A stretch of 48,941 nucleotides of DNA from Cyanophora paradoxa CCMP329 (GCA_004431415.1 QPMI01000349.1:1-48941), one strand, 5' to 3'. Shown: positions 5,418-35,204, counted from the first letter of the stretch. Made by a program: numbers and translations. The notes: generated by a model not told the origin, from the letters alone.

Positions 5418-6699
5418 TATATAAACGGCCACTGACTTGCCGCGCGCGTCAGTTGGGTCCGGGGAAGGGCATTTAACCTCGGCGAATCCAAGATCTAGAT
5501 GCAGAGGGCAGCTGCAGGGACCTAAACTAGCGCTTAAGCTTAAGAAGGCGCGCGCGCGGTGGCCGGGCGAACCGCTGGGCCGGCTCCGGCCGAGGCTGGC
5601 CATGCCAGGCGAGCTCAGCGGCTGCAGCTGTCTTCGCGATCGAGGCGAGCTGTCCTCTCAGAGGTAGGCCTCATGATCAGGGCCTAGCGAGCTAGCTATA
5701 GCTATGTAAGGCGCGGGCCGGGCCTTGGGAAGGGGGAGGGAACCTTGTCTGGCCATGGACGTGCTCGAGCTCCTGCAGCTGCCAGGCTGCGCATGCCCCG
5801 CGGCCGTCGCGCGCGGAGGCGTGGCGGGTGCACGAGTGCGCATGTGCTGCGGGTGCACGTGCGTCACGGCGCGCGTGGCTACATAGCTAGCTATAGGGGC
5901 TGGCCGGCGCCTCGGCCTCCGCGCGATCTGGGCGCGGGCGCGGGGACGCTGCTCAAGCTCACGTTCCGCTCAAAAAGCGGCGCAGCGGGCCAGCTCATGA
6001 TCAGCGGCGCCGGCTGCAGCAGCTGCAGGCATGCGCATCGCGCGCGCGGGGGGGGGCTCTGCGTCGCGCGGCGCGCGCGCCGCGCTGGCATCGGCTTGTT
6101 GCAAGTGGCATAGCCGGCCAAGTGCGGCCGGCTTGCGGCCGGCTTGTGCAATTGCGTCGGGGCGCGGTTGGCGCGGGTGAAGCGTGCGCGGCTGGCGCGG
6201 CTAGCCGCTGAGCCACAGCAAGCTGCCGCGCGCGCGAGAGGCGTAACCATTGTTGAGCCGAGCCGAGCTGCGGCGCCCGGGGGAGAAAGCGGCCGGGGGG
6301 TACTTTAAGAGGTTTCCCAGGGTAAGTTAACTGACTCTCCAATGTGATTGGCTAGCGCGCGCGGCGTCCTCCCACGCGACCGCGCTCGCGCCCGGCCTTG
6401 CGCTTGGAGTACGGAATGTCGAACATGATGCGCGCATCGACCTCGAACTGGTCTGGCCCGTATATCTGCTCCCTGTGCGTCGCTGGACCCATTTTTGTCC
6501 CGGGTGTTGGTGCCTGTTCCTGGATCACCCTTTCGTCGCCGGTCGGACGGGACCGGGAGACATGGTTTCGAGGTCCCCTTGGGATGCGCTTTCAGGACGT
6601 ACCGCGCGGCCCGGGTTTTGCGGAGGTCGGGGAAATGAGATTTGGGGTAGGGTTGGGCCCAAAGGAGAGGGACAGGGGAAGTGTTTTACCCTTCCCCAA
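5418..6699 (-). mobile_element. Non-autonomous Helentron/Helitron2-like element H1 (interior largely palindromic DNA)
   Basis: On the minus strand the 5' end is TT-GGGGAAGGG (6689-6699). The 3' subterminal IR is CCCTTCCCC (5461-5469), followed by hairpin CCAACTGAC...GTCAGTGG (5429-5456) and TTT/ATA. Its ~400 bp 5' region (6295-6699) is homologous to 7881-8275. Confidence 0.6.
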
Positions 6700-7306
6700 C
6701 AATCAACCGCCCCATACAAGCCTGATGAAAATTTCACGGCCGCACAGATGCTTGGATTCCTGGCGAGGCGACGTGCTTCTGAGCACTCGGGCGGCCCGGG
6801 GCCTCCCAACCCCCGCCGCAGCGGACTCCGCGCGCGCGCGCGCCAGCTGGAGGAGGTATCTCTCGGCCGAGGAGCACAGGTCGCCGGCTGCGGCCGGCGA
6901 TGCTGTGCGCCCGCCGGTTTTCACCCGGGCTCTCACGGGCTCCGGTTTCCGGCCCTCCCTGGGGTTAGTCGGCCTTGCTCTCTTAGTGCGCTTCTTCCCT
7001 GCCAAATTGAGGGCTATAGTTCAGGCTCAGCCGCTTCGACCTCATCCTCGCTTATACATCGGTCCTCTCTGTAGGCGCCCTTGTCCTGAGGGGGGTTATA
7101 GTAGCTCTGCTCTGCTTCGGCTCTCTAGGCAGGTGTGGGCAGTGTTTCTAGGAAGGTATAGGCCCCTTTCTCCAGTACAATAGCTCCACCCGGTCCGATG
7201 TCCGAAAGGCTTGCTCCCGTAGGCTCATCTCTCGACTTGACACAGATGGACACTGCAGTCATATCCCTAGCCATTTGTCTCGGTGTGTGCGAATTCATTT
7301 GTTATA

Positions 7307-7463
7307 TTGGACGGGACCGGGAGACATGGTTTCGGGGTCCCCTGGGGATGCGCTTTCAGGGTGTACCGCGCGGCCCCGGTTTTGCGGAGGTCGGGGAAAT
7401 GGGATTTGGGGTAGGGTTGGGCCCAAGGGACAGGGACAGGGGAAGTGTTTTACCCTTCCCCAA
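7307..7463 (-). mobile_element. Isolated 5'-terminal fragment of the same Helentron-like family
   Basis: Near-identical direct copy of ~6544-6699, ending at the same CCCTTCCCCAA terminus. Confidence 0.7.
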
Positions 7464-7880
7464 TATACGCGTACTACCGTAGTATACGTACGGTGCGATC
7501 GATCATGATCCGATGATCATCGGCCGCGGATCATCGGATCCATATATATGCCATGATGCATGATGCCATGATGATCATGCATCCATCGATCATTATCCGA
7601 TCATCGGATGATACGTGACTCAGTGACTCAATACTACTAGGCTAGTGAGGCCCCGACCGTGGACAAGCCTCAGGTATCAGGGCCTGACTCAGTGCATGAA
7701 GCTGAGCACTCAGAAACTTGAAAGAAAGAAAGAAAGAAAGAAAAGACCGTCGTCGGACGTCGACGTCTCATGATTGACCAGTGACTGGCAACTTGGCAAC
7801 CTACTAGGCTACTTTGATTCGAGCACAACTTGCAACGCGTTCACGTTTAGCTGCGCTACTACTGCGGCTAGCGCTAGCTA

Positions 7881-10335
7881 TTGGGGAAGGGAAAATCACT
7901 TCCCCTGTCCCTGTCCCTCGGGCCCAACCCTACCCCAAATCCCATTTCCCCGACCTCCTCAAAACCCGGGCCGCGCGGTACACCCTGAAAGCCCATCCCC
8001 AGGGGACCCCGAAACCGTGTCTCCCGGTCCCGTCCGACCAAAGGGTGATCCAGGAACAGGCACCAACACCCGGGACAAAAAGGGGTCCAGCGAGGCACAT
8101 GGAGCAGATATACGGGCCGGACCAGTTCGAGGTCAATGCTTGCATTATGCCCGACATTCCTTACTGCAAGAGCGAGGCCGGGCGCGAGCGCGGTCGCGTA
8201 GGAGGACGCCGCGCGTGCTAGCCAATCGCATTGGAGAGTGCGAACTTACCCTGCGAAACCTCTTAAGGTACCCCAGAAGCTGCGCGGGAAATGCTGTCGA
8301 GCAGCGCTCTGGGCGGGCGCCCGCGTGGCTCGGCTCCACCCGCAGGCATCGCTATCGGAGTCGATATCGAGCCGGCCAGCAAGCCCTGCAGTCAGCCAGG
8401 CTGCGGCGGATCTAGGCAGAAGTACGGCGGCAAGTGCCTGCACTGCGGCCAGCACTTCTGCACGAGGGACGCGCTTTACAGTCATGTGCTGCGATGTAGA
8501 CATCCGGCGGCAAGCAGCGCAGCCGTGAAAACCCGGGCAGCTGGCGCCCACGCGTTCAGCGAGCGGCCTGAGTGCGGGGACTGTCAGCAGAAGAGCAAAG
8601 CCACCGGCAGCAAAGACGTGTGGGGCTGTGACCTCTGCGCTGCCCACTTCGTGCGCTTCGGCCCGGCGAAGGTGGTGGCACACCACGCAACTGCATCCTG
8701 TGAAAAGAACCGCTCACGTGGTACGCGGTCATTATGCTTTCGAAGCGTTCGAAACTTACCTTTTCGCTACGTGTATACGCTGTCGCAGATGAGCCGGAGC
8801 TGCAGAGCATCGCTGCGCGCGCGGAAGCCGCGACCGCCGCCTCGGCGCCTGTACACGTCGGTCCGCGAGGCGCACCAAGTGCTCGACTTGCGATGCGAGC
8901 TCACAGCGCTCAATCGCAGAGCACGGGAAGCCGGCTGCTGCGGGATCGATTCCGCCTGCTGGCAGTCACAACCTCGCCTCGCGGCGCGGCTGCAATCGCT
9001 GCACGGACAAGCAGCTGCAAGCGGCGGCCGGTGCGAACGTCTGGGGCTGCGACTACTGCGGCGAGCACTACGTCGGCCGAGGTCGTCGTCCTCGAGTGCC
9101 TGCCGGGCCAGTACGTCCACTCGAACCAATACACGTTCCACAACGTCCTGGTTGCTTCCGCCGATGGGCGCGTCCCTCTGCTGGTCCCTCCGCCTCTCCG
9201 ATGCTGTTTTGACCCCTCCTGCTCAGGTGCACTGCAACCTTCCATCCCTACAAGAAGTCCCCTGGCCGCAGCCAAGTTTACCAGCTCGACTACCAGGCCG
9301 GCGACAAGCTTCAGCTCGTCTACACTACCTTTGAGTCGGACCTTGCGGGTTCGTGGGTCTCTCCGTGCTCTGCCTCAGTCTGCCCTTGCTGAGCTCTCCC
9401 CCAGATGGCCACGTCCACTTCATCCCCCAGCAGTACACTCGGGAGTACGTGATCACGGCCAAGGACGAGAAGACCCAGGCGCTTGACGCCCTCTACGACG
9501 CATTCCGGTGGGCACTTTCCACGCCTCTCCCGCTTCTGTTTGCTTTCGTGTGCCCACCGCCGTCCCTGCAGGAACGGCACGGCCACTCTGCAGTCCGGCC
9601 CCAAGTCCTGCCTGGTGATGCCGGCCCCGCCTGCCCCGATTGCGGCCCCGCCTGCGCCACAGCTGCCCGAGGACGACGACGAGTGCGTCCCTCTTTCTTG
9701 CTCCCGGATGCTCCAACGATCCTCAATCCCAGCCCGCAGGGATACGCCAAAGCGCCGCTCGGGTGGCCGCAAGGCCACCGTGATCTCCTCGGACGAGTCC
9801 GACAACGCCTCCGCCACCGGGTCTGCCGCCCCTCCGTCTCCTTCCCCCACCCCTCCTCCCTCTCCTTACCCGCTCTGCCCTCAGGGACGACCCCATCGAG
9901 GTCTCCTCGGACGAGGAGGGGGCAGCGCCCGAGCTCGACGCCGCCGAGGCGCCGGTCGTGAAGTCGGCCTCCGCCCCAAAGAAGGCCACCGGCATGAAGG
10001 GCCTCATGGCTCTCGCTGCGCCCCGCCTCCTCGGCACCAAGGCCGCGCGCCTCCTGGGCGCCGGCGTCTCCAAGGGCAAGAAGACCAAGAAGACGGCGGC
10101 CCCCAAGGCCGCCAAGTCCAAGGACACCAAGGGCGGAAAGAAGACCAAGGCCGTGCAGTGACAGTGCAGTCCCGCACGGGGCTGCCAAACTGCAGCCCCC
10201 CCGCCCATTTTGTGCGAGTCTTGTGCGCGCTGTGAATGCCAAGCCACTGCAGTGCAACAGTCCCGTTCACATGATTAAATTCCCTTCCCCGGACCCAACT
10301 GACGCGCGCGGCAAGTCAGTGGCTCTTTATATATA
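7881..10335 (+). mobile_element. Helentron/Helitron2-like element H2 carrying one spliced gene, no Rep/helicase
   Basis: Starts TT-GGGGAAGGGAA (7881-7893). Subterminal IR TTCCCTTCCCC (10280-10290), hairpin 10295-10322, then CTCTTT-ATATATA. Both ends are shared with H1. Confidence 0.65.
8291..10161 (+). CDS. Element-borne protein: Cys/His zinc fingers, putative OB-fold-like beta domain, acidic SIM-like motifs, Lys/Ala-rich C-terminal tail
   Basis: CLHCGQHFCTRDALYSHVLRC and CGDC..CDLC..HH motifs. At least six short introns (first at 8721-8788) join an open frame through VLVASADGCTATFHP..DYQAGDKLQLV, TVISSDESD and PIEVSSDEE to KKTKAVQ-stop. Confidence 0.6.
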
Positions 10336-24807: not shown

Positions 24808-26048
24808 ATGACATCGATAGGCACAGGCGTAAGCAGCGCCCTGTCGATGGTACATCCCCGTTTGACGCCTGCGCAGTATGACCTCTCCCCCACGACATTC
24901 TCGCCGGATGGCCGTGTCTTTCAGGTCGAGTACGCACTGAAGGCCGTCGACAACAGCGGGTACGCGCCGCAGCGAGAGCTCCTTGCGCTCGTCGTGAGCC
25001 ACTGCGTAGTACCGCGGTCGGCATCAAGTGCAAAGATGGCGTCGTGCTGGGCGTGGAAAAGCTTGTGGTTTCCAAGATGCTCGTCGAGGGCACCAACAGG
25101 CGGATTATGACCGTGGATCGGAGCGCTGGCATCGTGCGCATCGCCCGGGCGCTCCAATGGTTTTCGGCGCACACTGACGTCGGCCCGGCACGCCTGCCCG
25201 CGCGCTTCGCAGGCTATTGCTGGCTTGGTAGCAGACGGTCGGGCGCTCGGGAATCGGGCGCGGGAGGAGGCGTCGCAATACAAGAACTTCTACCAGGAGC
25301 CCATTCCCGGCAAGGTGTGGACACGGAGGCTGCCAAGCGTTGCCTCCGCCCATTTCCGATCATTCGTCTGATACTTTCCCGTCTGCAGGTCCTGTGCGAG
25401 CGCGTGGCTGGTTACGCGCACATGTACACATTGTACTGGTCGGTGCGGCCGTTCGGCTCGTCTCTGCTGCTCGCGACGTACGACAAGGACGGTCCTCAAC
25501 TATACGGCATCGAGCCCTCGGGCATTTCCTACGTGCGTGCACCGCCCGCGGAGCTGGCTGTGGCGACGCGGCTGATGGGTGCGAGCAGAGGTACTTCGCG
25601 ACGGCGATAGGGAAGGGGAAGCAGCAGGCAAAGACGGAACTGGAGAAGCTGAAGCTCAACGAGATCACCTGCAGGGAGGCCGTAAAGGAGATCGCCAAGA
25701 TGTGCGCCCCGCCCCGCCCGCCCGCCCCTCTAAACCAACCGGCGAGGATGTTTTGTTAATTAGCTCTATCCGAACCGCGCGCGCCTCGTGCGCGCGCTTT
25801 GAGGTCAATCTTAACGCTGAGCCCTTCCTTTCTCCTCCCATCCCCCCCCGCGGCGCTTTTGGGGGGCGGGGCCGACGCTCTGGCGCAGCATCTACAAGGT
25901 GCACGACGAGGTGAAGGACAAGGCGTTCGAGCTGGAGGTGTCGTGGGTGTGCGAGGAGAGCGGGCGGCAGCACCAGCTCGTGCCCAAGGAGCTCAAGGAG
26001 GAGGCCGAGCGCGCCGCCAAGCAGATGCTCGCCGACATGGAGGACTAG
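24808..26048 (+). CDS. PSMA3: 20S proteasome subunit alpha type-3 (alpha7)
   Basis: MTSIGTG|[72 protein letters not shown]; six introns. Confidence 0.97.
25741..25823 (+). ncRNA. Candidate intronic box C/D snoRNA in the last PSMA3 intron
   Basis: Intron is about three times the usual length. Terminal GGC/GCC stem, C-like box AGGATG (25745), D' CCGA (25770), internal GC hairpin, D box CTGA (25817). ATTAGCTCTA just before D' is antisense to conserved 18S UAGAGCUAAU. Confidence 0.6.
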
Positions 26049-26177
26049 GCCCCCGCCGCCCCGCCTGCCCCCGCCGCCCCCGCCCCGAGCCCCTCCGCCC
26101 CTCCGCCCACCCTCCCGCCCCCGGCCGACCCCGTCCCGGCCGCCTCCCGCTCCCGCTCCCCTCGCTCCGTCTCCTCC

Positions 26178-26548
26178 CGTGTACATGTGTTTTTTCAGTG
26201 CGGACAGTCCGGTCTGCATGCGGCCGCTGCCTTGCTCAGCGCTCCGGCGGCGCCCCTTGACGACGCAATGCGTGGCGTGCATGGCCTCCGGAGTCGACCG
26301 GAATTAACGGACACGAATAGATAGTACAATAAGCTTCTGGATGGTGGAGCGGGGTGCGGGGGGCGGGCTCGAGCTCAGGCATCCTCGGGGGGGGGGGGGG
26401 GGGGGGGGGGGGTGCTGTCGGAGAGCTCGAGAAGCTCGAGAAGCATCTTGAAGGGCGTGCGGCCGAGGAGGGGGGCGGGGGCGGGGTGCCCCGCCCCGCC
26501 CCGAAGCTTAAGATCGGTGTCCTGCTGAACGCATCCACCCCGCTTCCT
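26178..26548 (-). repeat. Diverged direct duplicate of the last coding bases and 3' flank of the CUB gene (35443-35790), bracketing the 9 kb island
   Basis: Colinear match, e.g. TTTTTCAGTGC.GACAGTCCGGTCTGCATGC and GGCCGAGGAGGGGGGCGGGGGCGG, with transitions and 6-nt palindromic insertions. Confidence 0.9.
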
Positions 26549-26683
26549 GCGGCCGCCGGCGCAGGCCGTTCCCGATTTGATTACTTTCAGTACTCAAAAC
26601 AAAAGGGCATAGGCGACGAGCTTGGTGTACCTTACACCGCGGTTGGGCGGACCTTCGCAACCCTAACCCTAGGTTAGTCGGAG

Positions 26684-26941
26684 AGAGAGAGAGAGAGAGA
26701 GCAAGTAAAAGACACGCCCACACCAGCAAGACTGGAAGAAGAAGAAGAGTATGTATAAGACACGCCCAAGCCGGTTGTGCGGTTTTGACGAAAGGCGAAG
26801 GACCCGAAGGCCCGAAGCACCAGCAAGACTGGGTATGACAGAACCGCAGAGGCCCCTAAAGGAGCTTGCAAGGCTCCGTCAGGGACCCACTAGTGTGGGT
26901 AGTGATGATCATGAGAGATGCTCTCGAGAACCTGCGAAAGA
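26684..26941 (-). mobile_element. 5'-truncated copy of retroposon A2 with 16-bp TSD
   Basis: Reverse complement of ~31910-32062 including the (CT)n tail. TSD CCTAGGTTAGTCGGAG at 26668-26683 and 26942-26957. Confidence 0.9.
26736..26817 (-). mobile_element. 5'-truncated copy of retroposon B nested in the A2 fragment, 15-bp TSD
   Basis: Matches 28433-28506 with a (CTT)n tail. TSD CACCAGCAAGACTGG at 26721-26735 and 26818-26832. Confidence 0.9.
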
Positions 26942-28430
26942 CCTAGGTTAGTCGGAGCGACAGATTTCTCCCTCTTATAATGCCATTGCGCGCGGAGGTA
27001 TGGAGAAAACCTCTAGGGGAGGGTTCTGCCTTCATCTCCGGTCTCCTTCTACTCGTGCTCTTGATCACCTTCAGGCTGCTTCTGTTGTTATGGTGCACCC
27101 TCCTTCTGGTGATTCTCCTCCTTCCAGCTTTTTGTATGAATTCGGGTATCAGTCCCCCACACCTCGTATGCTTGACTCAGTGAGCTTGATGAGGCTCTTC
27201 GTTTCTAACGAAGAATTCCTCGATGAGCTTGTGGCTTTTGAGGCAGCCCTTCGATCTGAAGACGACCTTTATCTTTCTTCCAAATATGCCACATATCCTC
27301 ATTGGCTGTCAGATAAGGGTGTCACTGTGCGCTCCTCCCTTCTGGGGGATGGTGACTTCCCACGCCTTCTCGCAGTGGCTTTCCACTTGCCGGTCACATC
27401 TTGTTCTCCGACTATCTCTGAGTCTGTGGATAGATCTTCATATACCACTTTTTGCCGGCCAAATTTCCAGCCTTGGTCTACTGTGTCTGTGTCCTCTTCC
27501 CACTGCCGTTTTTCCCTGCTTGTAGAGGTTCCTGTCACTCATCCTCTCCACTTGGCCTCTCGTGGGCAGTATGACAAGCTAAAATCTTCTTTGGGCCATC
27601 CTACTAAGATTCAGTCTATTGGCCTACAGGGCCCTCATGGTGTTAGTCGATTTCATGTCAACTCTCCTCGTCCTGAGTTTGCTAGCGCCCCCTACTGGGC
27701 TTCCGTCGCTGATCCCACCCGCTCCTCCAACATGAATTACTTTTCTGCAAATACTGCAGCCAATTGCAGCCTCCCTGCAGTCCAGGAGTGTACCGATCAC
27801 ACCCATCCCATTCGTACTGCGTATTATACCATTCGGGCTCTTTCTGATTCTCGCATCCTGTATCATTTCCACCGTGATCCTACTTTCTACTTTTTGCCTG
27901 CTGCTGTTTCTGACGCTACTAAGTCTTTCCACATTAAGCAGAAGGGTCAGCATGTTGCAGATATCATTACTCGTGAGGCTCGTGATGCTCGTCAGTCTTC
28001 TAGCGCTGCTGCTTCATCCTCTGGTGTCCGTCGTTCTCCTTCTCCTCCTCCGAAGCGTGGCCGTTCTTCTGGAGGGAGCCATGGCTCTAAAGATGATATG
28101 GATGAGGCAGTTTTGTAAATTGATTGTGCTTGCTCCTGCTTCTACCTTTGTCTTGTGGGTTGCCACCCTCAATACCCCATGCGGCTCGATAGGGAGCGGG
28201 TCGTTTTGGGATTCGGGGTTTTCCATGGCGGGGACCCTGTGGGTCTCTGCATGGTTGCTCTCTTTTTGCTCTTTTGGCACAGGGGCTGTCGCCCCTGTCC
28301 CTAGCGGTGCGTACGCACATCACTACCTGTGCCAGGAAGGTCCCTGGCGTGCCTTGCACGTCCCTTTAGGGGCCTCTGCGGCGCTGCTATACCTTTTCAC
28401 CCTGGTCCACGGGCGTGTCTTTTGCTTCAT

Positions 28431-29622
28431 AAAGAAGAAGAGTATGTATAAGACACGCCCAAGCCAGCTGTACGGTTTTGACGAAAGGCGAAGGACCTGA
28501 AGGCCCAAGGCACAATCGACAGTGAACCAGCCAGACAAGGGTAGTGGCGGCGCAGACATGCGCCTATACAGTTCACCATGTATGCCCCGGCGGTCCGGCG
28601 CTCATACACGCAAACCTGGAAAGCAATCGGCGAAATCCCAATGCGGGCCTCTTCCTAATGCCGGCCTGGGGTATTCCCGATCCCGTTCACATTTGTAAGC
28701 CCGAATTGTAGTGATAGAGAGAGAAAGATTAAAGAACCATGTCATCAGCATCATCAACACAGTCAATGAGCACAACAGGAGAACCAGAATCGTCACTGAG
28801 AACCGAAAGGTCAGCAGGAGAGGAAAGATGCAAACGTTTAACGGAAGGAAGAAAAGATGGGTCACTGGATCCGTCCGTGAAACCATCAGAGAAGCAAGGA
28901 AGAGCAGGGGAAGAGGGTCGACGGCGCTTCAGGGTGAAACCAGGGAGCAAATCAAGGTCAGTGTCCATAGGAACAGAGGGAGAAGGAAGAGATGACGAAT
29001 GGCTCCCAACATCGTGAGCATCATCAGTGATGTCAGCAGCATCTACAGGAGAAGACAGAGGTAATTCAGCGTCGAGTTCGGGATCAAAGAGGTCAATAAT
29101 CACTTGAGGAGAGAGTGGAGGCGAACTGGTATCATCCACCGTGTCATCGACAACGTCAGACGCTGGCACAGGGGGTCCCAAATCATCGACACGGCGACGA
29201 CGAAGAGGCGGTTCGTCTTCAGTGTCGAAATCCGGCGGAGGGTGAGGGGGAGTGTGAGGGGGCGAAGGAGACGGAGGAAGCATAGGGTCAGGAGCAGGAG
29301 CAGGATCTGGTGCCCCAGGGGGGTCGTCGTCGTCCGAAGAGGTGCTAGTGGAAGAGTCATCAGGAGCATCAGGGCCCAGGTCTGAAAGGTCAGAGGAGTC
29401 CGAACCATCATCAGGGGGGGACATATACCCTGCAAGATCTTCCTTTTCAAGGCGTTGCAGCAGGACAGGCCGCACACTGGCATAGGCAAACTGAGCAACA
29501 AGGGGGCTAGGGGCCAGATCGGGGCTAGGAGCAGGCTGAGCGATATGTTCGCAATGCTCATAAGAGGCTAGGGAATGGTCATAAGCACGAGCAGCGTCCA
29601 AGAGATTAGCGCAAAATGAGGA
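28431..29622 (-). mobile_element. Retroposon family B, 5'-truncated, encoding an acidic Pro/Ser/Asp-rich C-terminus (open frame 29622 to 28729)
   Basis: TSD CTTTTGCTTCAT at 28419-28430 and 29623-29634. 3' end GGGCGTGTCTTATACATACT(CTT)n. The listed ATG at 29634 comes from the TSD. Confidence 0.85.
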
Positions 29623-29825
29623 CTTTTGCTTCATCTCTCTCTCTCTCTGCCTTTGCAGAATACAACCCGGCCCTCGTGCCCTCGGAACCTAGAATTTTGC
29701 CCGTCAGCGGAGCGAGTAACATCCAGTAAGGAACTTTTAGCAACAGCATATACCACTCCGCTTAGACTAGATTTAGCGTAACCCATATACCTTAACCTTC
29801 ACTTAGCTTAGCTAGTGCTCGTTAC

Positions 29826-32062
29826 CCCCCTCGTTGGCCATCGGCCCCATTTCTGGCCTCTGGCCCACATACCTCTCGCCCCGTGTGCACGGGTGCGCTC
29901 TTTACGCAGATCCTGGCCGCCAGCTGCGCGCTTAGACGCCGATTTGTGGCTCGCCCAGCCAACGTTCAAATCTTTCCATCTTGGACAATCCTGACCTTTG
30001 CTCCACTGTACGCAGCTTTTAGAATGTCCGCCAATCCGCCCCGTGCTCCGGGGCAGCGCCGCCAGCAGCAGGGACCGCCGCCGGCTCCCCGTGCACTTGA
30101 GGGTTCTGTGGAGGTTGCCGACTTCTTCGCTGTTGACGCTCAGTCACCATCGCTTTCGGGCAATTCCCGCGTCCCTGACTACCACCACCTTCCTCGCGTC
30201 CGCGAGTTTGCCGCGTTCATGACGCGGCCCGTCACCCGCAAGATTGGCGGCCTGCCCAAGTACATGCATGTTCAGACTGTCCTTGCCGATGCGCTTCGCT
30301 CTTGCAAGCCCTTCGATGATGTCTCCGTCGCCATGCGCTTCTGTATCCAGGAAGGTGTCATCGTGAATGAACCTGCAGACTTTGGCCGTGACCTCCCTGA
30401 ATCTGTCCGCCTCTCGGCCTTCCAGAACCGCCTTGCTCCCATCAATTCCATGTTCTCTCAGCACCCATGGTCCTCCTCCGCGAAGCACGGCTTTGTTAAG
30501 CAGTCCACTTCTCAGGATTCCTATAGTGGTGCTACCTTCAATGCTTTCACTTATCAGTTTTACTATCGCTCAGTTGTTGGTGGCTTTGGCGCCTATTTAG
30601 CTCATCATCGTACCTTGTCTTCGATTTTCAACTGTACTCCAATTTCTCACCCAGCTCGTACCATGCTTTCGACCCTCACTCCTTTGCAGACCAAGCCCCA
30701 TTTCCTTCAAGCATATGATGTCTTTTATGGCCTTAAGACTGTTGGTGTCTCTGATGTGGTAGACCAATTTTTCCCGATCGAGCTTTCTTATTATCAATCT
30801 GTTCTCCGTACTGCCCCTGAGTCCTCCAATGGTGCTGGCCCCTCTGGTGCTAAGCCACCCCGCTTCCTCATTCGCCTTGGCGCCCAAGCCTTCCTGGCTG
30901 AACTCAAAACGATGGCACTTAACCTTTCCAAGCCAGATTGTGTCTTTATGTCTTCGCTTCCTGTTGAGCGTGTAGAGCTGAATTCTGAGAACACCATCCC
31001 CTTCAATCCCTTCAAACTCGCTGGCTTGGATAAGTCCATTCCTTCTCCAGTTTTTCTGGCAGCTGCCTTTACTCAGCCTGTACTTGATATGGTCGCTAAG
31101 ACCACTTTCACTGGCTCTAGCTCCCGCTATGATCTTCTTTGTCGCCCTGAGCTTGGTGATTTCCCTGCTGCTCATACCGATCGTGCTCATCTTAGTCTCA
31201 TTTTGAAAGTGCCCTTGGCTTCTATGCTCTTCCAGAGCCTCGAGCGTCGTACTAGTTTCATCAAGCCTCGGCCCGCTCGGCCCTCGCCATGCGTTCCCTC
31301 ATGATTCTTGGCTCGGATAACTACATTCACAAATTTTATGTGCAGACTCTTCTTCCTGAGTACTCTTCTCTTGAGTATTATTCCTCTCTTGCTCACAATG
31401 GCAAGGCTCTCGATCCTTCTTCTTACTCTTTTGCCTCCACCTCTCCTTGCTACCAGATCCCTTGCCAGGAGCCTGACAAAAATTACAGTATTCTTGATGT
31501 TGATGAGCACACCTTCTTGTACCACTTCCATCAGGATCCCATGTTTTACTTTTTGCCTGCCTCTGTGCGCCCCCGACTCGATGCTTTTTATGATGAGGCT
31601 CGCAAGCAGCTGGCCCTTGAGAAATCGTTTTCTGATTCATTTGAGGAAGGTCAGCATCTCGATGGCACTGCCCGTAGCCCTAGTGCTAAGCGTTCTCGCC
31701 CCTCTGATCCCTCTACTCCTTCTGGTTCTAACGACACCATTGTGTAATTTTCTTCTGTACTTCTAATCTTGAATGATCATCTTTGGTTTCCCTCTCTCCC
31801 GTCTTCCCTAACACCCTGTCTGGCCTGTTAGGGAGCAGGTCAGTTCAGGAAGTTAGGGCTTTTTCTTTGCATGGGGTCCCTACGGCCCGGGTAGGGACTT
31901 TGTGCAGCTTGTCTTTTGCAGGTTCTCGAGAGCATCTCTCATCACTACCCACGCTAGTGGGTCCCTGACGGAGCCTTGCAAGCTCCTTTAGGGGCCTCTG
32001 CGGTTCTGTCATACCCAGTCTTGCTGGCGTGGGCGTGTCTTTTACTTGCTCTCTCTCTCTCT
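29826..32062 (+). mobile_element. Retroposon family A2, apparently full length (2.24 kb), no RT domain
   Basis: TSD CTAGTGCTCGTTAC at 29812-29825 and 32063-32076. 5' UTR, single intronless ORF, 3' GGGCGTGTCTTTT (32031) and (CT)n tail. Confidence 0.88.
30024..31747 (+). CDS. A2 ORF, ~570 aa unknown protein with one frameshift near 31265-31290
   Basis: ORFs 30024-31304 and 31289-31747 are jointly colinear with the A1 ORF: PVFLAAAFTQPV/PRLLAVAFHLPV, CRPE/CRPN, HLSLILKVPL/RFSLLVEVPV. Both end in SPS..KR NLS-like tails. Confidence 0.7.
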
Positions 32063-32444
32063 CTAGTGCTCGTTACGTATATGTGTCACACTAAATCCTT
32101 GTTCTGAGTAGTAGTAGGATGGATGCTTGAGCTGAATTAATACCGCGACAAAAAAAAAGGCCCGCCCCAGGCCTGGGCCCCGCAGCAGCACGTGGAAGGG
32201 TGGGCCGGGGCGCCCGGCCATCGGGGGCGGGGGGGTGGGCCGGGGCAGGGGCGATGTCTGTGGTTGCAATTGCTTTCCAGGTTTGCGTGCCACGTGTGTG
32301 AGCGCCGGACCACCGGGGCATACATGGTGAACCGTAGAAGCGTTTGCGCAGCCTCTACTCTTGTCTAGCTTGTTCACTATCAATTGTACGTTTTTTTTCG
32401 CCGCCACTGCTCTTGTCTAGCTAGTTCACTATCAATTGTGCCGT

Positions 32445-32523
32445 GGGCCTTCAGGACCTTAGCCTTTTGTCAAAACTGTACTGCTGGCTTGGGCGTGTTT
32501 TATACATATCGTCTTCTTCTTCC
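32445..32523 (+). mobile_element. Older 3' fragment of retroposon B
   Basis: Diverged reverse complement of 28433-28506, ending GGGCGTGTTTTATACATA..(CTT)n. No TSD recognised. Confidence 0.8.
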
Positions 32524-32599
32524 TAATGATTCTTCCTGATGGGGTGGAGGTGCTGCGAGCTCCTGCATGCCCAGCAGGGCCGGCCTCTCACCATTCATA

Positions 32600-34204
32600 G
32601 AAGTCTGCTGTGCTAGCCTCCTAACTGCTCAACTTGCATTTTGAGGTACTTTGTGAAGATGGCTAGAATCAGGACCCGATCTTTCAGTCTGGAAACATCA
32701 AGTTGATTGGACTCTACGAGACCACGATCATATCTGAAATGCCAGGTTGTGTTAGAGGCGGGAATACTGCAGCAACATTGCAGTGGTACCTCAGCAGTTT
32801 TGCACGTTTAGCAAGTGGTGGGTACACGCCAGATTCCACGAAGTCCTTCAAAAACTGTCTGTTTACGACAAGCTGCTAACATGTAAGCATAAAGACTCAG
32901 GGCACAACAGGTAGGCTTACCCTGTAGAACGAATACTTCGTTCCGATCTGTACACAGATGTGAATGCTGAGAGAATTTACATCAAGCTGCTGAAAATTTT
33001 TCTACGTGCCAATCAGACCAAGACAAGTATTGGATGCCGAACAAACCTGAAGTGCGCCAAATGCATATGCACATGCTTGCGCCAGCGTTCGTCTCGACTC
33101 CACATCTGGCCGTTTCACCTGTCCAGGAAAACAAGGAGCCAATCCAATCAACCATTGCCTTTCCTGAGAAAGATCCAGAAATACCTCGATGATGACTGCA
33201 CTGATCACTGAGCTAGCTTTGTATGCCAAGCAAATGGTCAAATCTGGGCGCGAGCGTACTTCTTTTCCTGCTGTTACAAGAGGAATCCCTTCATAAGACA
33301 CAGTCTAGAGTCTGGTCAAAGCAAGTGATGGAAAGAAAAAAAAGCTACCCGCACCTCAGCAGGACATTTGAGTGCACCCACAAGTTCATCAAGAATAAAT
33401 TCCGACAATTCGAGTGAAGCCATTTCGGAGTTACTGTACACAGTTGCTCTCCTGTAGAGGTTGTTTGCGACTCGTTTCTCAAGTTCGAAGCTGCTAACCT
33501 GACCCGCCTTATGAAGGCGCCGAAATCGCCATACAGCAAGCTGCCAGGTGCGTCATGCAGATCGCCAGCCTCCGTAAACGCGTTGAGAACTTTGCTTGGA
33601 ACATCTGCAGCGAAGTCAGACATCTTTTGCGCACATTTTCTATCATCATGCACGGTTTTTGTCAACAGCTAGGTCAGACTGGAACACTTCATCATACACG
33701 CATCCCCGCTCTTCAACCAGGCGAACAAGCATGCCTGCGAGGGAACAGACGAAAGGCGCTCTTCAAGGCGAACAAGGCCCTGTTAGGTAACAAGTGTCAA
33801 ATGCACCTTCCTTCCATCTTGAAGGTTCGATGGGCTTGAATGTGGAAGTTAGGCGCGGAATCCCGTAGGTGGGCTCCGTGAGGGCTTCTGAAATCTCCAG
33901 CCCGCTGCTTGGAACTTTCTTTCGGCTTGCGTTGCTTCTTACACTCCGAAAGTGGAGACAAAAGGGAAGACGAATTGCAGGGCCGGGCACGGCGCCGAGT
34001 GCGCGGGAAGGCCACATGCACGCTTGCATGTTGCGAATTAAAGAGCAGGCGCCAGAGATGCCGGCGCGACGCAGCATCTGCGATTGCGACCTGCGCCGTT
34101 CCGTGCATATAGACAGAGCAGCGGGCTGGAGATTTCAGAAGCCCCCCCTTACCTGGCGCCGTTTGACCTGCTTTTTCGGCGCTGCCGTTCCAAATGTATG
34201 CATA
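32600..34204 (-). pseudogene. Decayed intron-containing gene for a PD-(D/E)xK restriction-endonuclease-fold protein; boundaries approximate
   Basis: Spliced core SYEGIPLVTAGKEVRSRPDLTICL..AVIIE|VKRPD..TLAQACAYAFGALQ|..IHICVQIGTKYSFY (~33300-32925). Flanking frames are broken by stops. Confidence 0.6.
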
Positions 34205-34740
34205 TATAAACTAGCACGCGGCCGCGGCGGCCTCTAGATCTGCTCGCGATCGGGCTCTGACTGGGCCGGCCGCCGGATGGAAACGGGGTAGCATATAGCT
34301 ATAGCTAGTACTAATACGGTAGGGAATTCGAAATTAAAGCGAGCTCGAGGGGCGCGCGCGCCCGCGGCCCGAGCCGGCGCCGGCGCCGGCCGGGGCGCCC
34401 GCGCGCGCCGGCGCGCGCCGCCGCCGGCCAGGGCGGCCCGCGGCCGGCGGCCTGCGCCGCGGCCGGCAGCATATCACTGAGTCATACTATGCATATGCAT
34501 ATATATGCATATGCATATGCATGCGCATGCCGCGGCCCGGCCGGCGCCGGCGCCGCGCGCGCCTGCACTGCCGCAGTGCCGCCGGCGCCGCCGCCGGCCT
34601 GCGCCGCAGCCGCCGCTGCAGCTGCGCATGCAGGCTAGCTAGCGCGCTAGCTAGCTATAGCTATATGTACGTGCACGCGCGCCAAGTCCAGCAAGCCGCT
34701 AGCCGGAGCTCAGCTATAGCTAGCTAGGCTGGCCAGCTAG
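34205..34740. repeat. Palindrome-saturated low-complexity DNA
   Basis: Overlapping GGCGCC/GCCGGC, ATGCAT/CATATG and GCTAGC/CTATAG runs. Confidence 0.85.
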
Positions 34741-35204
34741 CAAGCCTGTCGGCTCGCCTGCCGGCTAAATTGTGCGCTTGTACCCAGCAATTGGCTCCAT
34801 TCCCCCCTACTCGAGTCTCGATGCGCCACAAACTCGCAGGAGCTCTTTTTTTCCGCATTCGGTACAACAGGTACTTGATGCGGCCTAGCGCGCCACGCTC
34901 TGCTTCCCGAGCACTGGCATGTATGACAAGCTTTGCTGAGCATCGCAAGAGCTTTCTTATGCACTTGATCCGGCCCCTATACGACCACAGGATCAGGCGC
35001 TGCAAGGGATAGTCCAGGAAAGGGTCCGGTCCTTTTTTCCGCGCAGCGTTCTGCTCTTTCCGGGTTCCGACAACGAATTCCGGGCTCTCATGCATGCACT
35101 AGCACTCGGTTAAGAGCTCGGAGCTGGATCGGGAGATGAGCAGACTCGTCATTTTAAATTTGTGAGTTACCGAAAACGGGGGCCCTACCCCGTTTCCAAT
35201 TAAA

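Follow-up and report, generated by a model that had tools for sequence, protein, structure and literature searches.

Insertions and their target repeat

The window analyzed here, a 48,941-nt stretch of the Cyanophora paradoxa CCMP329 genome (GCA_004431415.1 QPMI01000349.1:1-48941), contains a nest of six insertions from three related families (A1, A2, and B), all of them young and piled into one older repeat, which we call H. An initial annotation had already proposed six insertions of three families, and motif placement, element boundaries, and tails all bear this out. The elements, with plus and minus denoting strand, are as follows:

~26572-32158, plus: repeat H, older, about 440 bp, 47.5% GC, with an A9 end; reconstructed from pieces at ~26572-26683, ~26958-27031, ~29654-29825, and ~32077-32158, which are split by three later insertions; 5' limit approximate
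26684-26941, minus: A2(-), 5'-truncated, the last 161 nt of A2 plus a (CT)10 tail, broken by the B fragment; 16-bp TSD CCTAGGTTAGTCGGAG at 26668-26683 and 26942-26957
26736-26817, minus: B fragment, the final 82 nt of family B plus a (CTT)4 tail; 15-bp TSD CACCAGCAAGACTGG at 26721-26735 and 26818-26832
27032-29645, plus: A1, 5'-truncated, 1,410 nt of its own sequence, ending in GGGCGTGTCTTTTGCTTCAT(CT)7; 8-bp TSD TCTGCCTT at 27024-27031 and 29646-29653; placed from an empty-site joint (27009 to 29646) and a reading of the junctions
28431-29622, minus: B(-), 5'-truncated, 1,192 nt, ending in GGGCGTGTCTTATACATA and then CTCTTCTTCTTT; 12-bp TSD CTTTTGCTTCAT at 28419-28430 and 29623-29634, read from the window sequence alone
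29826-32062, plus: A2(+), complete unit, 2,237 bp; 14-bp TSD CTAGTGCTCGTTAC at 29812-29825 and 32063-32076
32262-32523, plus: B(+), 5'-truncated, ~262 nt that include a 45-nt internal duplication, ending in GGGCGTGTTTTATACATATCG(TCT)3TC

All six copies terminate in GGGCGTGT(C/T)TT followed by a (CT)n or (CTT)n tail, as had been annotated. The window holds six exact matches to GGGCGTGTYTT, every one at a predicted 3' end (26709-19 minus, 26757-67 minus, 28411-21 plus, 28450-60 minus, 32031-41 plus, and 32491-501 plus), and with up to one mismatch allowed eight are found against 1.74 expected, a number equalled by none of 100 shuffles. The TSDs measure 8, 12, 14, 15, and 16 bp and include the four exact ones first reported; the (CT) tails run to 7.5-10.5 repeats (tails of (GA)10.5 at 26681-26701, (TC)7.5 at 29634-48, and (CT)8 at 32049-64), and all three B copies carry (CTT) tails of 3-4 repeats. 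Five of the six copies are 5'-truncated. TSDs that range from 8 to 16 bp, frequent loss of the 5' end, and microsatellite tails that differ in length from copy to copy are the features of LINE-dependent retroposons that arise by target-primed reverse transcription (TPRT), which is how the initial annotation had read the nest. No terminal direct repeats were found inside the units, and an Rfam scan of 25500-35000 at E <= 0.1 returned no hammerhead ribozyme of the kind that would mark a Penelope-like element or retrozyme, nor any other family except two chance-level matches outside the elements. No tRNA head was found either, and the definition of a SINE (under ~700 bp, non-coding, with a pol III head) does not describe the A2 unit, which is 2.2 kb long and coding.

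H is a seventh, older, poly(A)-tailed repeat and the landing pad of three of the insertions. GC content is 69.7% in the window and 67.6% in the published Cyanophora genome (PMC6704402), and the pile-up at one spot probably reflects a preference for rare ~50% GC DNA in a ~70% GC genome. A low-depth contig found in runs X1 and X20 joins 27009 directly to 29646, and an X1 contig of equal depth joins 29811 to 32063, with 14 letters fitting either side. Together, these joints look like a paralogous copy of H without A1 and A2(+), i.e., a copy with empty sites. The start of A1 had originally been placed at 26552, which is wrong: the element begins at 27032, is 5'-truncated, and has its own 8-bp TSD, as the empty-site contig shows. 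Among the smaller insertions, A2(-) is 93-99% identical to the opposite strand of 31911-32062, and the B fragment is 92.7% identical to 28432-28513. B(-) sits inside the last 12 nt of A1 ahead of the tail, and B(+) lies in GC-rich host DNA about 100 bp beyond the end of H, where a TSD was looked for and none was found.

The complete A2 unit

A2(+) is the only copy in the nest with an intact 5' end, and its parts are arranged as follows:

29826-29892, plus: exon 1, 67 nt
29893-30015, plus: 5'UTR intron, 123 nt, GT..AG
30024-31747, plus: A2 ORF, with its ATG at 30024, wholly in exon 2
31748-32062, plus: strongly structured 3'UTR of 301 nt, closed by the module GGGCGTGTCTTTTACTTG and the (CT)8 tail

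The unit had been credited with a single protein of ~570 aa, which does not hold for the copy in the window, where the ORF is split into 30024-31304 (426 aa) and 31289-31747 (152 aa) by a CCC run at 31281-83 that is one C short. In contrast, contigs of four public runs have an extra C behind 31280 and encode 574 codons without interruption, the dominant version in the family; besides the extra C, these contigs show 0-1 differences from A2 across 30015-31573. A2 is multi-copy and young: 20 runs, drawn from 9 studies, contain 82-93% of its sampled words, contigs of high depth match it without a difference across 1.1-1.7 kb, and many loose contig ends fall at the 3' junctions 26735/6 and 28431.

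The intron is spliced in RNA and kept in DNA copies, the run types (RNA or DNA) being guessed. A spliced joint from 29891 to 30015 (cut +1) is present in X1 (depth 385) and X5 (depth 56), as contigs rather than reads, and the GT..AG joint is seen only in these two runs, both guessed to be RNA, whereas unspliced contigs cross the intron in X14 (29863-31536) and X20 (29841-30933). Because the intron is kept in the window DNA and in X14 and X20, and because the tail is (CT)n, A2 is not a processed retrogene. A kept intron is unusual for retroposed copies, and a DNA-level copying mechanism would also fit it. As a separate observation, the depth of A2 in two non-RNA runs is ~5-20x that of low-depth neighbors, a ratio that is not a copy number.

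The A1 and B reading frames

The truncated A1 and B(-) elements each retain part of an ORF:

27033-28118, plus: A1 ORF fragment of 361 C-terminal codons and a stop
28729-29622, minus: B ORF fragment of 297 codons and a stop, with an open 5' end at the truncation

The ATG at 27000 is part of H, and the 372-aa ORF that begins there takes ~11 of its codons from H. The A1 and A2 proteins are colinear with 26-30% identity (E = 1e-14 and 2e-5), which upholds the proposal that A1 carries a diverged paralog, and both end in Ser/Arg-rich KRxR tails. When A1 is set against a ~7% diverged copy, third codon positions account for 25 of the 38 listed differences (p = 4e-5), and 26 of the 38 are synonymous versus 12 that are non-synonymous. 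For A1, this third-position excess supports the earlier suggestion of selection on the cargo, and the A1 ORF appears from these comparisons to be under purifying selection.

The B ORF is rich in D, P, and S, contains RRRR/KRRR patches, and has no relation to the A ORF. It runs open into the truncation point, so the B copies may be what is left of a longer element, possibly one that encodes an RT further 5'. The joints from 28428 to 29623 (with TGT between) and from 29646 to 31798 were considered as an empty site of B(-) and rejected because both belong to a single 2.8-kb contig, of high depth and from another family, in which a CT-rich 3'UTR start cross-matches 24-nt stretches.

The 3' module and codon use

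A1, A2, and B probably form one superfamily with a common 3'-terminal module. This module consists of a stem with a 3' arm ending in GGG, followed by single-stranded CGUGUCUU(U/A)U.. and then by the microsatellite, with (CU)n repeats for A and (CUU)n repeats for B. The 3'UTRs of A2 and A1 are predicted to fold more stably than shuffled sequences (z = -5.7 and z = -3.5, respectively), whereas that of B is no more stable than its shuffles (z = -0.9). A fold common to the A1 and A2 3'UTRs has 95% of cells paired and four compensatory pairs, versus 36-54% with the partners slid; this conservation covers two families only and is reached by 19 of 500 shuffles. The three ORFs also have the same odd third-position use (T3 39-50%, A3 4-8%, GC3 41-54%), while GC3 in a neighboring host exon is 100%.

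Searches for relatives of the encoded proteins

We searched for relatives of four ORFs, the A2 ORF being queried as two separate pieces in the homology searches. Pfam hmmscan matched 0 families at E <= 1, including RT of the RVT_1 type found in LINEs, and neither a Pfam match nor a homolog of an APE-type or RLE-type endonuclease was obtained. The complete A2 unit thus gives no signal of RT or endonuclease (EN), in line with the lack of recognizable motifs noted at first, and its 2,237 bp, with limits set by TSDs, leave no room for either. Word-indexed searches found no homolog of the A2 426-aa part, A1, or the B ORF, an exhaustive phmmer search of 1.84 billion proteins with the A2 426-aa part found nothing, and PDB sequences gave noise only. 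Exact-product look-ups of the four ORFs retrieved no record, and DNA pattern scans of metagenome and viral contigs for the conserved 3'UTR block and the B terminal 23-mer gave 0 matches. No RRM, zinc-knuckle, or coiled-coil match was obtained for the A proteins, and the AlphaFold models were unusable (pLDDT 34 for the A2 part alone and 40 for A1 with the two A2 pieces as alignment rows).

Mode of propagation

As no copying enzyme was found in them, the A and B elements would have to borrow the reverse transcriptase of another element. Our preferred explanation, which we consider reasonably probable, is that the nest consists of non-autonomous, ORF-carrying non-LTR (target-primed) retroposons mobilized in trans. 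The A elements would be complete transcription units made up of a 67-nt exon, a 123-nt spliceosomal intron, an ORF of ~574 codons, a 3'UTR of 300 nt that is structured, and the tail, and the full-length, unspliced RNA would serve as the template. An RT encoded elsewhere would read the common 3' module, in the 'stringent' mode of LINE/SINE partnerships, prime on the nicked target, and slip on the microsatellite, and such priming and slippage would produce the variable tail lengths, the 8-16 bp TSDs, and the frequent 5' truncation. The spliced RNA would be the mRNA for the orphan protein. As this protein is apparently kept by purifying selection, the element probably needs it in order to propagate; it may be, for example, an ORF1/Gag-like RNA-binding or nuclear-import protein, to judge from the KRxR tails. 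Tails made of microsatellites are shared by the CR1, L2, Rex1, and I clades and, not being RTE-specific, place none of the families in the RTE group.

A more specific form of mobilization in trans is conceivable, though we would not wager on it. A and B may make up a 'divided' non-LTR system in which RT and EN are carried by one family with the GGG-CGUGUCUU module, either full-length B or the family that shares the A2 3'UTR from the stop codon, and in which separate A-type elements have their own promoter, a spliced 5'UTR intron, and a selected orphan particle or chaperone protein. This would amount to a HeT-A/TART-like division of labor across glaucophyte chromosome arms, with a protein fold new to mobile elements.

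The families might instead be the 3' parts of ordinary RT-encoding LINEs, with RT and EN lying upstream in full-length members. The prevalence of 5'-truncated copies is in keeping with this, as is the existence of another family that has the A2 3'UTR from the last three codons on but departs from A2 in the coding sequence ahead of it (contigs of X1 and X5 with a loose end at 31739). For B, the reading may well hold, as its ORF is open at the truncation and longer B-like contigs continue past 29619. A2(+), however, is flanked by an exact 14-bp TSD and opens with a 5'UTR exon, an intron, and an ATG of its own, and high-depth contigs end near its 5' end (29841 and 29863) without running on, which makes the reading unlikely for the nest as a whole.

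A host-gene origin, with the elements forming a young orphan gene family whose protein serves the cell and which LINE machinery copies passively like retrogenes, would agree with an ORF that appears to be under purifying selection and to be expressed and spliced. Such genes would not be expected to have a dedicated 3' module and tails common to three families, one of them with an unrelated ORF, nor codon use utterly unlike that of the host, nor near-identical, dispersed, often truncated copies inserted in one another, and we regard this account as quite improbable.

The initial annotation had also raised a virus-derived cargo, and in a specific form this would be a dsRNA-virus capsid gene of the partitivirus/picobirnavirus type that was captured, retroposed, and then amplified. 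The capsid segment of a dsRNA virus is similar in size to the A2 unit, with its 2.2 kb and one ORF, and when the A2 426-aa part was used for a feature search in the ESM-Atlas, most of the clusters returned were coat proteins of Partitiviridae and Picobirnaviridae (PF20895, PF20816, and PF25666), at 0.90-0.93. This language-model hint is weak: recognition was low (887), common features numbered 147-158, where true members of a family typically have 170, only four of the ten best matches agreed, and the A1 paralog had no usable Atlas match. Family profiles gave no capsid (no Pfam match at E <= 1), the phmmer and PDB searches described above were equally empty, and the A2 unit has a spliceosomal intron, all of which renders a viral origin highly improbable. 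Lastly, we give almost no credence to the orphan protein being a new replication or integration enzyme that makes the elements autonomous; its lack of a recognizable family and of a known partner would allow this, but it has no polymerase or nuclease motifs, the same 3' module occurs on B with a wholly different ORF tail, and the TPRT hallmarks indicate a conventional LINE RT.

Comparison with known systems

Mobilization in trans through a shared 3' end has a parallel in stringent LINE/SINE partnerships, of which eel UnaL2/UnaSINE1 is an example. In partnerships of this L2 type, as in the nest, a short conserved 3' module is common to several families and followed by a microsatellite of varying length, as would be expected if the RT recognizes the 3' end of the RNA and slips on its template (PMC5786205). 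Unlike SINEs, which are small and pol III-derived, the hitch-hikers in the nest would be 2.2-kb, pol II-type, intron-bearing, and protein-coding, with no tRNA or Rfam head, and their ends differ from those of L1-type copies in having the GGGCGTGTCTT module and CT/CTT tails rather than poly(A).

Precedents for RT-less, ORF-carrying non-LTR elements are provided by HeT-A and HAL1 (PMC5537684, PMC5753468). HeT-A, from the HeT-A/TART/TAHRE set at Drosophila telomeres, is likewise a non-LTR element with only a Gag-type ORF and no pol; it is abundant and expressed, its ORF is selected, and its RT is believed to be supplied by a co-resident family. In contrast to the nest elements, which are interstitial with TSDs and have microsatellite tails, an orphan protein, and a 5'UTR intron, it has a poly(A) tail, telomere-specific insertion without TSDs, Gag zinc knuckles, and known partners (PMC5537684). 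The mammalian HAL1 (half-L1), as portrayed in a passage of PMC5753468 citing Bao & Jurka 2010, is similarly non-autonomous and keeps a single ORF and the 3' end, ORF2 having been lost; its ORF is demonstrably L1 ORF1 and its parent LINE is known. In the nest, which had been likened to HAL1, the database searches gave no homolog of the ORF, and two or more ORF lineages, deeply diverged at 26-30% identity, each have a family to themselves.

Very few cases of RT-less protein-coding non-LTR elements are known (HeT-A and HAL1), and in these the retained ORF is a recognizable Gag or ORF1. The nest shows, in an early-branching alga, at least two anciently diverged ORF lineages and a third family with another ORF on one 3' module, in elements that are apparently transcribed, spliced, and under purifying selection and whose protein has no relative in 1.8 billion sequences. 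These families help annotate part of the 11.5% of the Cyanophora assembly classed as 'unknown repeats' (PMC6704402). If the partner is found, the system would offer a natural test of which RNA features are read by a LINE RT, of whether a separate element can supply an ORF1-like function, and of how intron-bearing RNAs become retrotransposition templates.

Anatomy of the insertion nest

The insertion nest described in the initial annotation is real, but three corrections to that description are needed. Its anatomy bears out the count of six insertions belonging to three families (A1, A2, and B), and every insertion terminates in a common 3' end consisting of GGGCGTGT(C/T)TT, a short family-specific stretch, and then a microsatellite. 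The motif has six exact matches in the window, all of them positioned at insertion 3' ends, and when one-mismatch sites are included, 8 matches are observed versus 1.74 expected, a number reached in none of 100 shuffles. The tails of the A copies are (CT)7.5, (CT)8, and (CT)10.5, and those of the B copies are (CTT)3-4. The four target-site duplications (TSDs) reported previously, of 16, 15, 12, and 14 bp, are indeed exact, and the A-type TSDs start with CT, as does the A tail. A TSD was also looked for at B(+), and none was found. A seventh and older element, the repeat H, had been overlooked; it received three insertions.

Elements of the nest and the adjoining host exon (signs in names give the strand)
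End at 26048, plus strand: last exon of the host gene, GC3 = 100%
26572-26683, 26958-27031, 29654-29825, and 32077-32158, plus strand: H, ~440 bp, 47.5% GC, A9 end at 32158
26684-26941, minus strand: A2(-) fragment, exact 16-bp TSD
26736-26817, minus strand: B fragment nested in A2(-), exact 15-bp TSD
27032-29645, plus strand: A1, 5'-truncated, 8-bp TSD TCTGCCTT
28431-29622, minus strand: B(-), inserted in the last 12 nt of A1 before the CT tail, exact 12-bp TSD
29826-32062, plus strand: A2(+), complete unit of 2,237 bp, exact 14-bp TSD
~100 bp past the end of H, plus strand: B(+), no TSD found

Contigs from four public sequencing runs were aligned to the nest stretch. A low-depth contig joins 27009 to 29646, and the 16 letters between match 27010-27023 except for a small indel; in run X1, a contig of equal depth passes from 29811 directly to 32063, and 14 letters at this joint fit either side. 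We read both joints as another copy of H lacking A1 and A2(+), which makes A1 itself an insertion truncated at its 5' end. The 372-aa ORF read from the ATG at 27000 does not belong to A1 throughout, as that ATG is part of H. H itself contains no ORF and no tRNA and has no Rfam match; it could represent the 3' terminus of a LINE of the poly(A) type. Within B(+), a 45-nt segment is duplicated in tandem at 32343-32439 (89% identical, at a spacing of 52), a duplication that is absent from B(-).

The complete A2 unit

The complete unit had been said to encode a single protein of ~570 aa. The window copy of this ORF is split in two, but an extra base in contigs of the sequencing runs restores one ORF of 574 codons.

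ORF parts of A2(+) in the window
30024-31304, plus strand: part 1, 426 aa
31289-31747, plus strand: part 2, 152 aa

All four runs have contigs with one extra C in the CCC stretch at 31281-83, and this C unites both parts into the 574 codons (frames checked). The assembly is PacBio-based and the difference lies in a homopolymer, so the missing C might reflect an assembly error and not a mutation. Across 30015-31573, contigs with high word depth agree with A2 except for the extra C, and 82-93% of the unit's sampled words are present in 20 runs from 9 studies; the A2 family is thus multi-copy and young.

In X1 and X5, both guessed to be RNA runs, 29891 is joined to 30015. When cut one place further right, this joint skips 29893-30015, a segment of 123 nt with GT..AG ends and a pyrimidine-rich 3' end, and contigs from runs X14 and X20 cross the same segment unspliced. 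From these contigs, whose runs are of guessed RNA or DNA type, we read 29893-30015 as a spliceosomal 5'UTR intron that is spliced from the mRNA and kept in genomic copies. The ATG of A2 lies within exon 2.

Encoded proteins, selection, and codon usage

A1 (C-terminal 361 codons) and A2 encode colinear paralogues with 26-30% identity which have the blocks PSGxxPPxFL, LAxAFxxPV, CRP, and LYHFHxDPxFYFLPAxV in common. Neither protein gave a match in Pfam (E <= 1), in a word-indexed search of 5.8 billion clusters, or, beyond noise, among PDB sequences, nor did the 426-aa part of A2 in an exhaustive phmmer search of 1.84 billion representatives. An ESM-Atlas feature search with part of A2 retrieved partitivirus and picobirnavirus coat-protein clusters at 0.90-0.93, with low recognition and shared-feature counts, and gave no usable match for A1; the capsid link of A2 is a weak one, to be treated as a lead only. 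AlphaFold models of the A proteins were unusable (pLDDT 34 and 40). The B ORF is still open where the copy is truncated. Its final 297 codons encode a stretch rich in D, P, and S that contains basic patches, and a homologue search with this ORF found none.

The proposal that the cargo is under selection holds up for A1. One contig family is ~7% different from the window's A1, and 25 of the 38 listed differences in the ORF, a best-supported subset of the full set, fall at third codon positions (binomial p = 4e-5), with 26 being synonymous versus 12 non-synonymous. The A1, A2, and B ORFs are also alike in third-position usage (T 39-50%, A 4-8%, GC3 41-54%) and are wholly unlike the adjoining host exon. 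This peculiar usage in all three families argues that they probably have a common life style and are not ordinary host genes.

Predicted RNA structure of the 3' ends

Compared with shuffled sequences, the 3'UTRs of A2 and A1 form much more stable predicted folds (z = -5.7 and -3.5, respectively); that of B is no more stable than its shuffles (z = -0.9). The A1 and A2 3'UTRs are only ~75% identical, yet the same helices are predicted for both. The 3' arm of a predicted long-range stem (CCCACG/CGUGGG in A2, CCUGUG/CACGGG in A1) ends in the GGG of the common motif, and a predicted hairpin is nested inside this stem around the invariant CCTTTAGGGGCCTCTGCGG. No pairing is predicted for the CGTGTCTT.. 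stretch and the tail. Pairing is possible in 95% of the cells of the A1/A2 alignment, with four of the pairs being compensatory, versus 36-54% with the partners slid; with two families compared and 19 of 500 shuffles reaching it, this is suggestive of a conserved 3' fold.

Runs X1 and X5 both show a loose end at 31739 that reveals another family: it matches A2 in the last three codons (..IV*) and the 3'UTR, and its coding sequence upstream, of which 30 letters are visible, is different. This family could be a relative or a partner element.

Genomic setting

The GC content of the window is 69.7%, which is compatible with the 67.6% of the published Cyanophora genome, a PacBio RSII-based assembly with 11.5% unclassified repeats (PMC6704402). 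It is 73% outside the region of interest and drops to ~50% across 26.5-34.4 kb. The seven elements (six insertions and H) occupy what was originally ~600 bp, and self-comparison of the window found no further copies of them elsewhere in it. Given the genome's composition, an insertion preference for moderate-GC DNA would be the simplest reading of this pile-up.

Several other features lie in the window. Between the host gene stop codon (26046-48) and the nest is an unbroken run of 26 G (26387-26412) with GGGGC/GCCCC repeats on either side. Immediately right of B(+) lies ~1.9 kb of ~50% GC DNA (32524-34400) that lacks ORFs longer than ~120 aa and resembles none of the A, B, and H families; it may consist of decayed repeats or be intergenic DNA of unusually high AT content. 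An array of the palindromic hexamer GCCGGC and related units (34352-34467; period 6, ~16 copies, also period 39) gives inverted self-matches at 34354-34465. At 6398-8160, a ~200-nt segment containing ORF fragments ...RDRETWFRGPLGMRFQ.VPRGPGFAEVGEM.FGVGLGP... occurs in three copies, near 6550, 7330, and 7900 (inverted), and constitutes a local family of repeats with no relation to the retroposon nest.

Proposed mobilisation of the A and B families

The initial annotation interpreted the insertions as gene-carrying, non-autonomous retroelements mobilised by an unseen LINE, perhaps of the RTE group. The hallmarks of target-primed reverse transcription stand, as does the absence of reverse transcriptase (RT) and endonuclease, but the RTE affiliation is without support. 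Variable-length TSDs, 5' truncation, slippage-type tails, and A-type TSDs starting with CT all point to target-primed reverse transcription. The complete A unit encodes neither RT nor endonuclease, as had been claimed, and is therefore probably copied in trans; no RNA-gene head or ribozyme was detected by Rfam and ARAGORN. The common terminal module would be an obvious handle for a 'stringent' RT, a type of recognition known from LINE/SINE partnerships (PMC5786205). Since the B ORF continues upstream, B could be the 3' end of the partner element. A role for the A protein would be deduced from the selection on it and from precedents, the closest of which are HeT-A (PMC5537684) and HAL1 (PMC5753468), likewise ORF-carrying non-LTR elements without RT.
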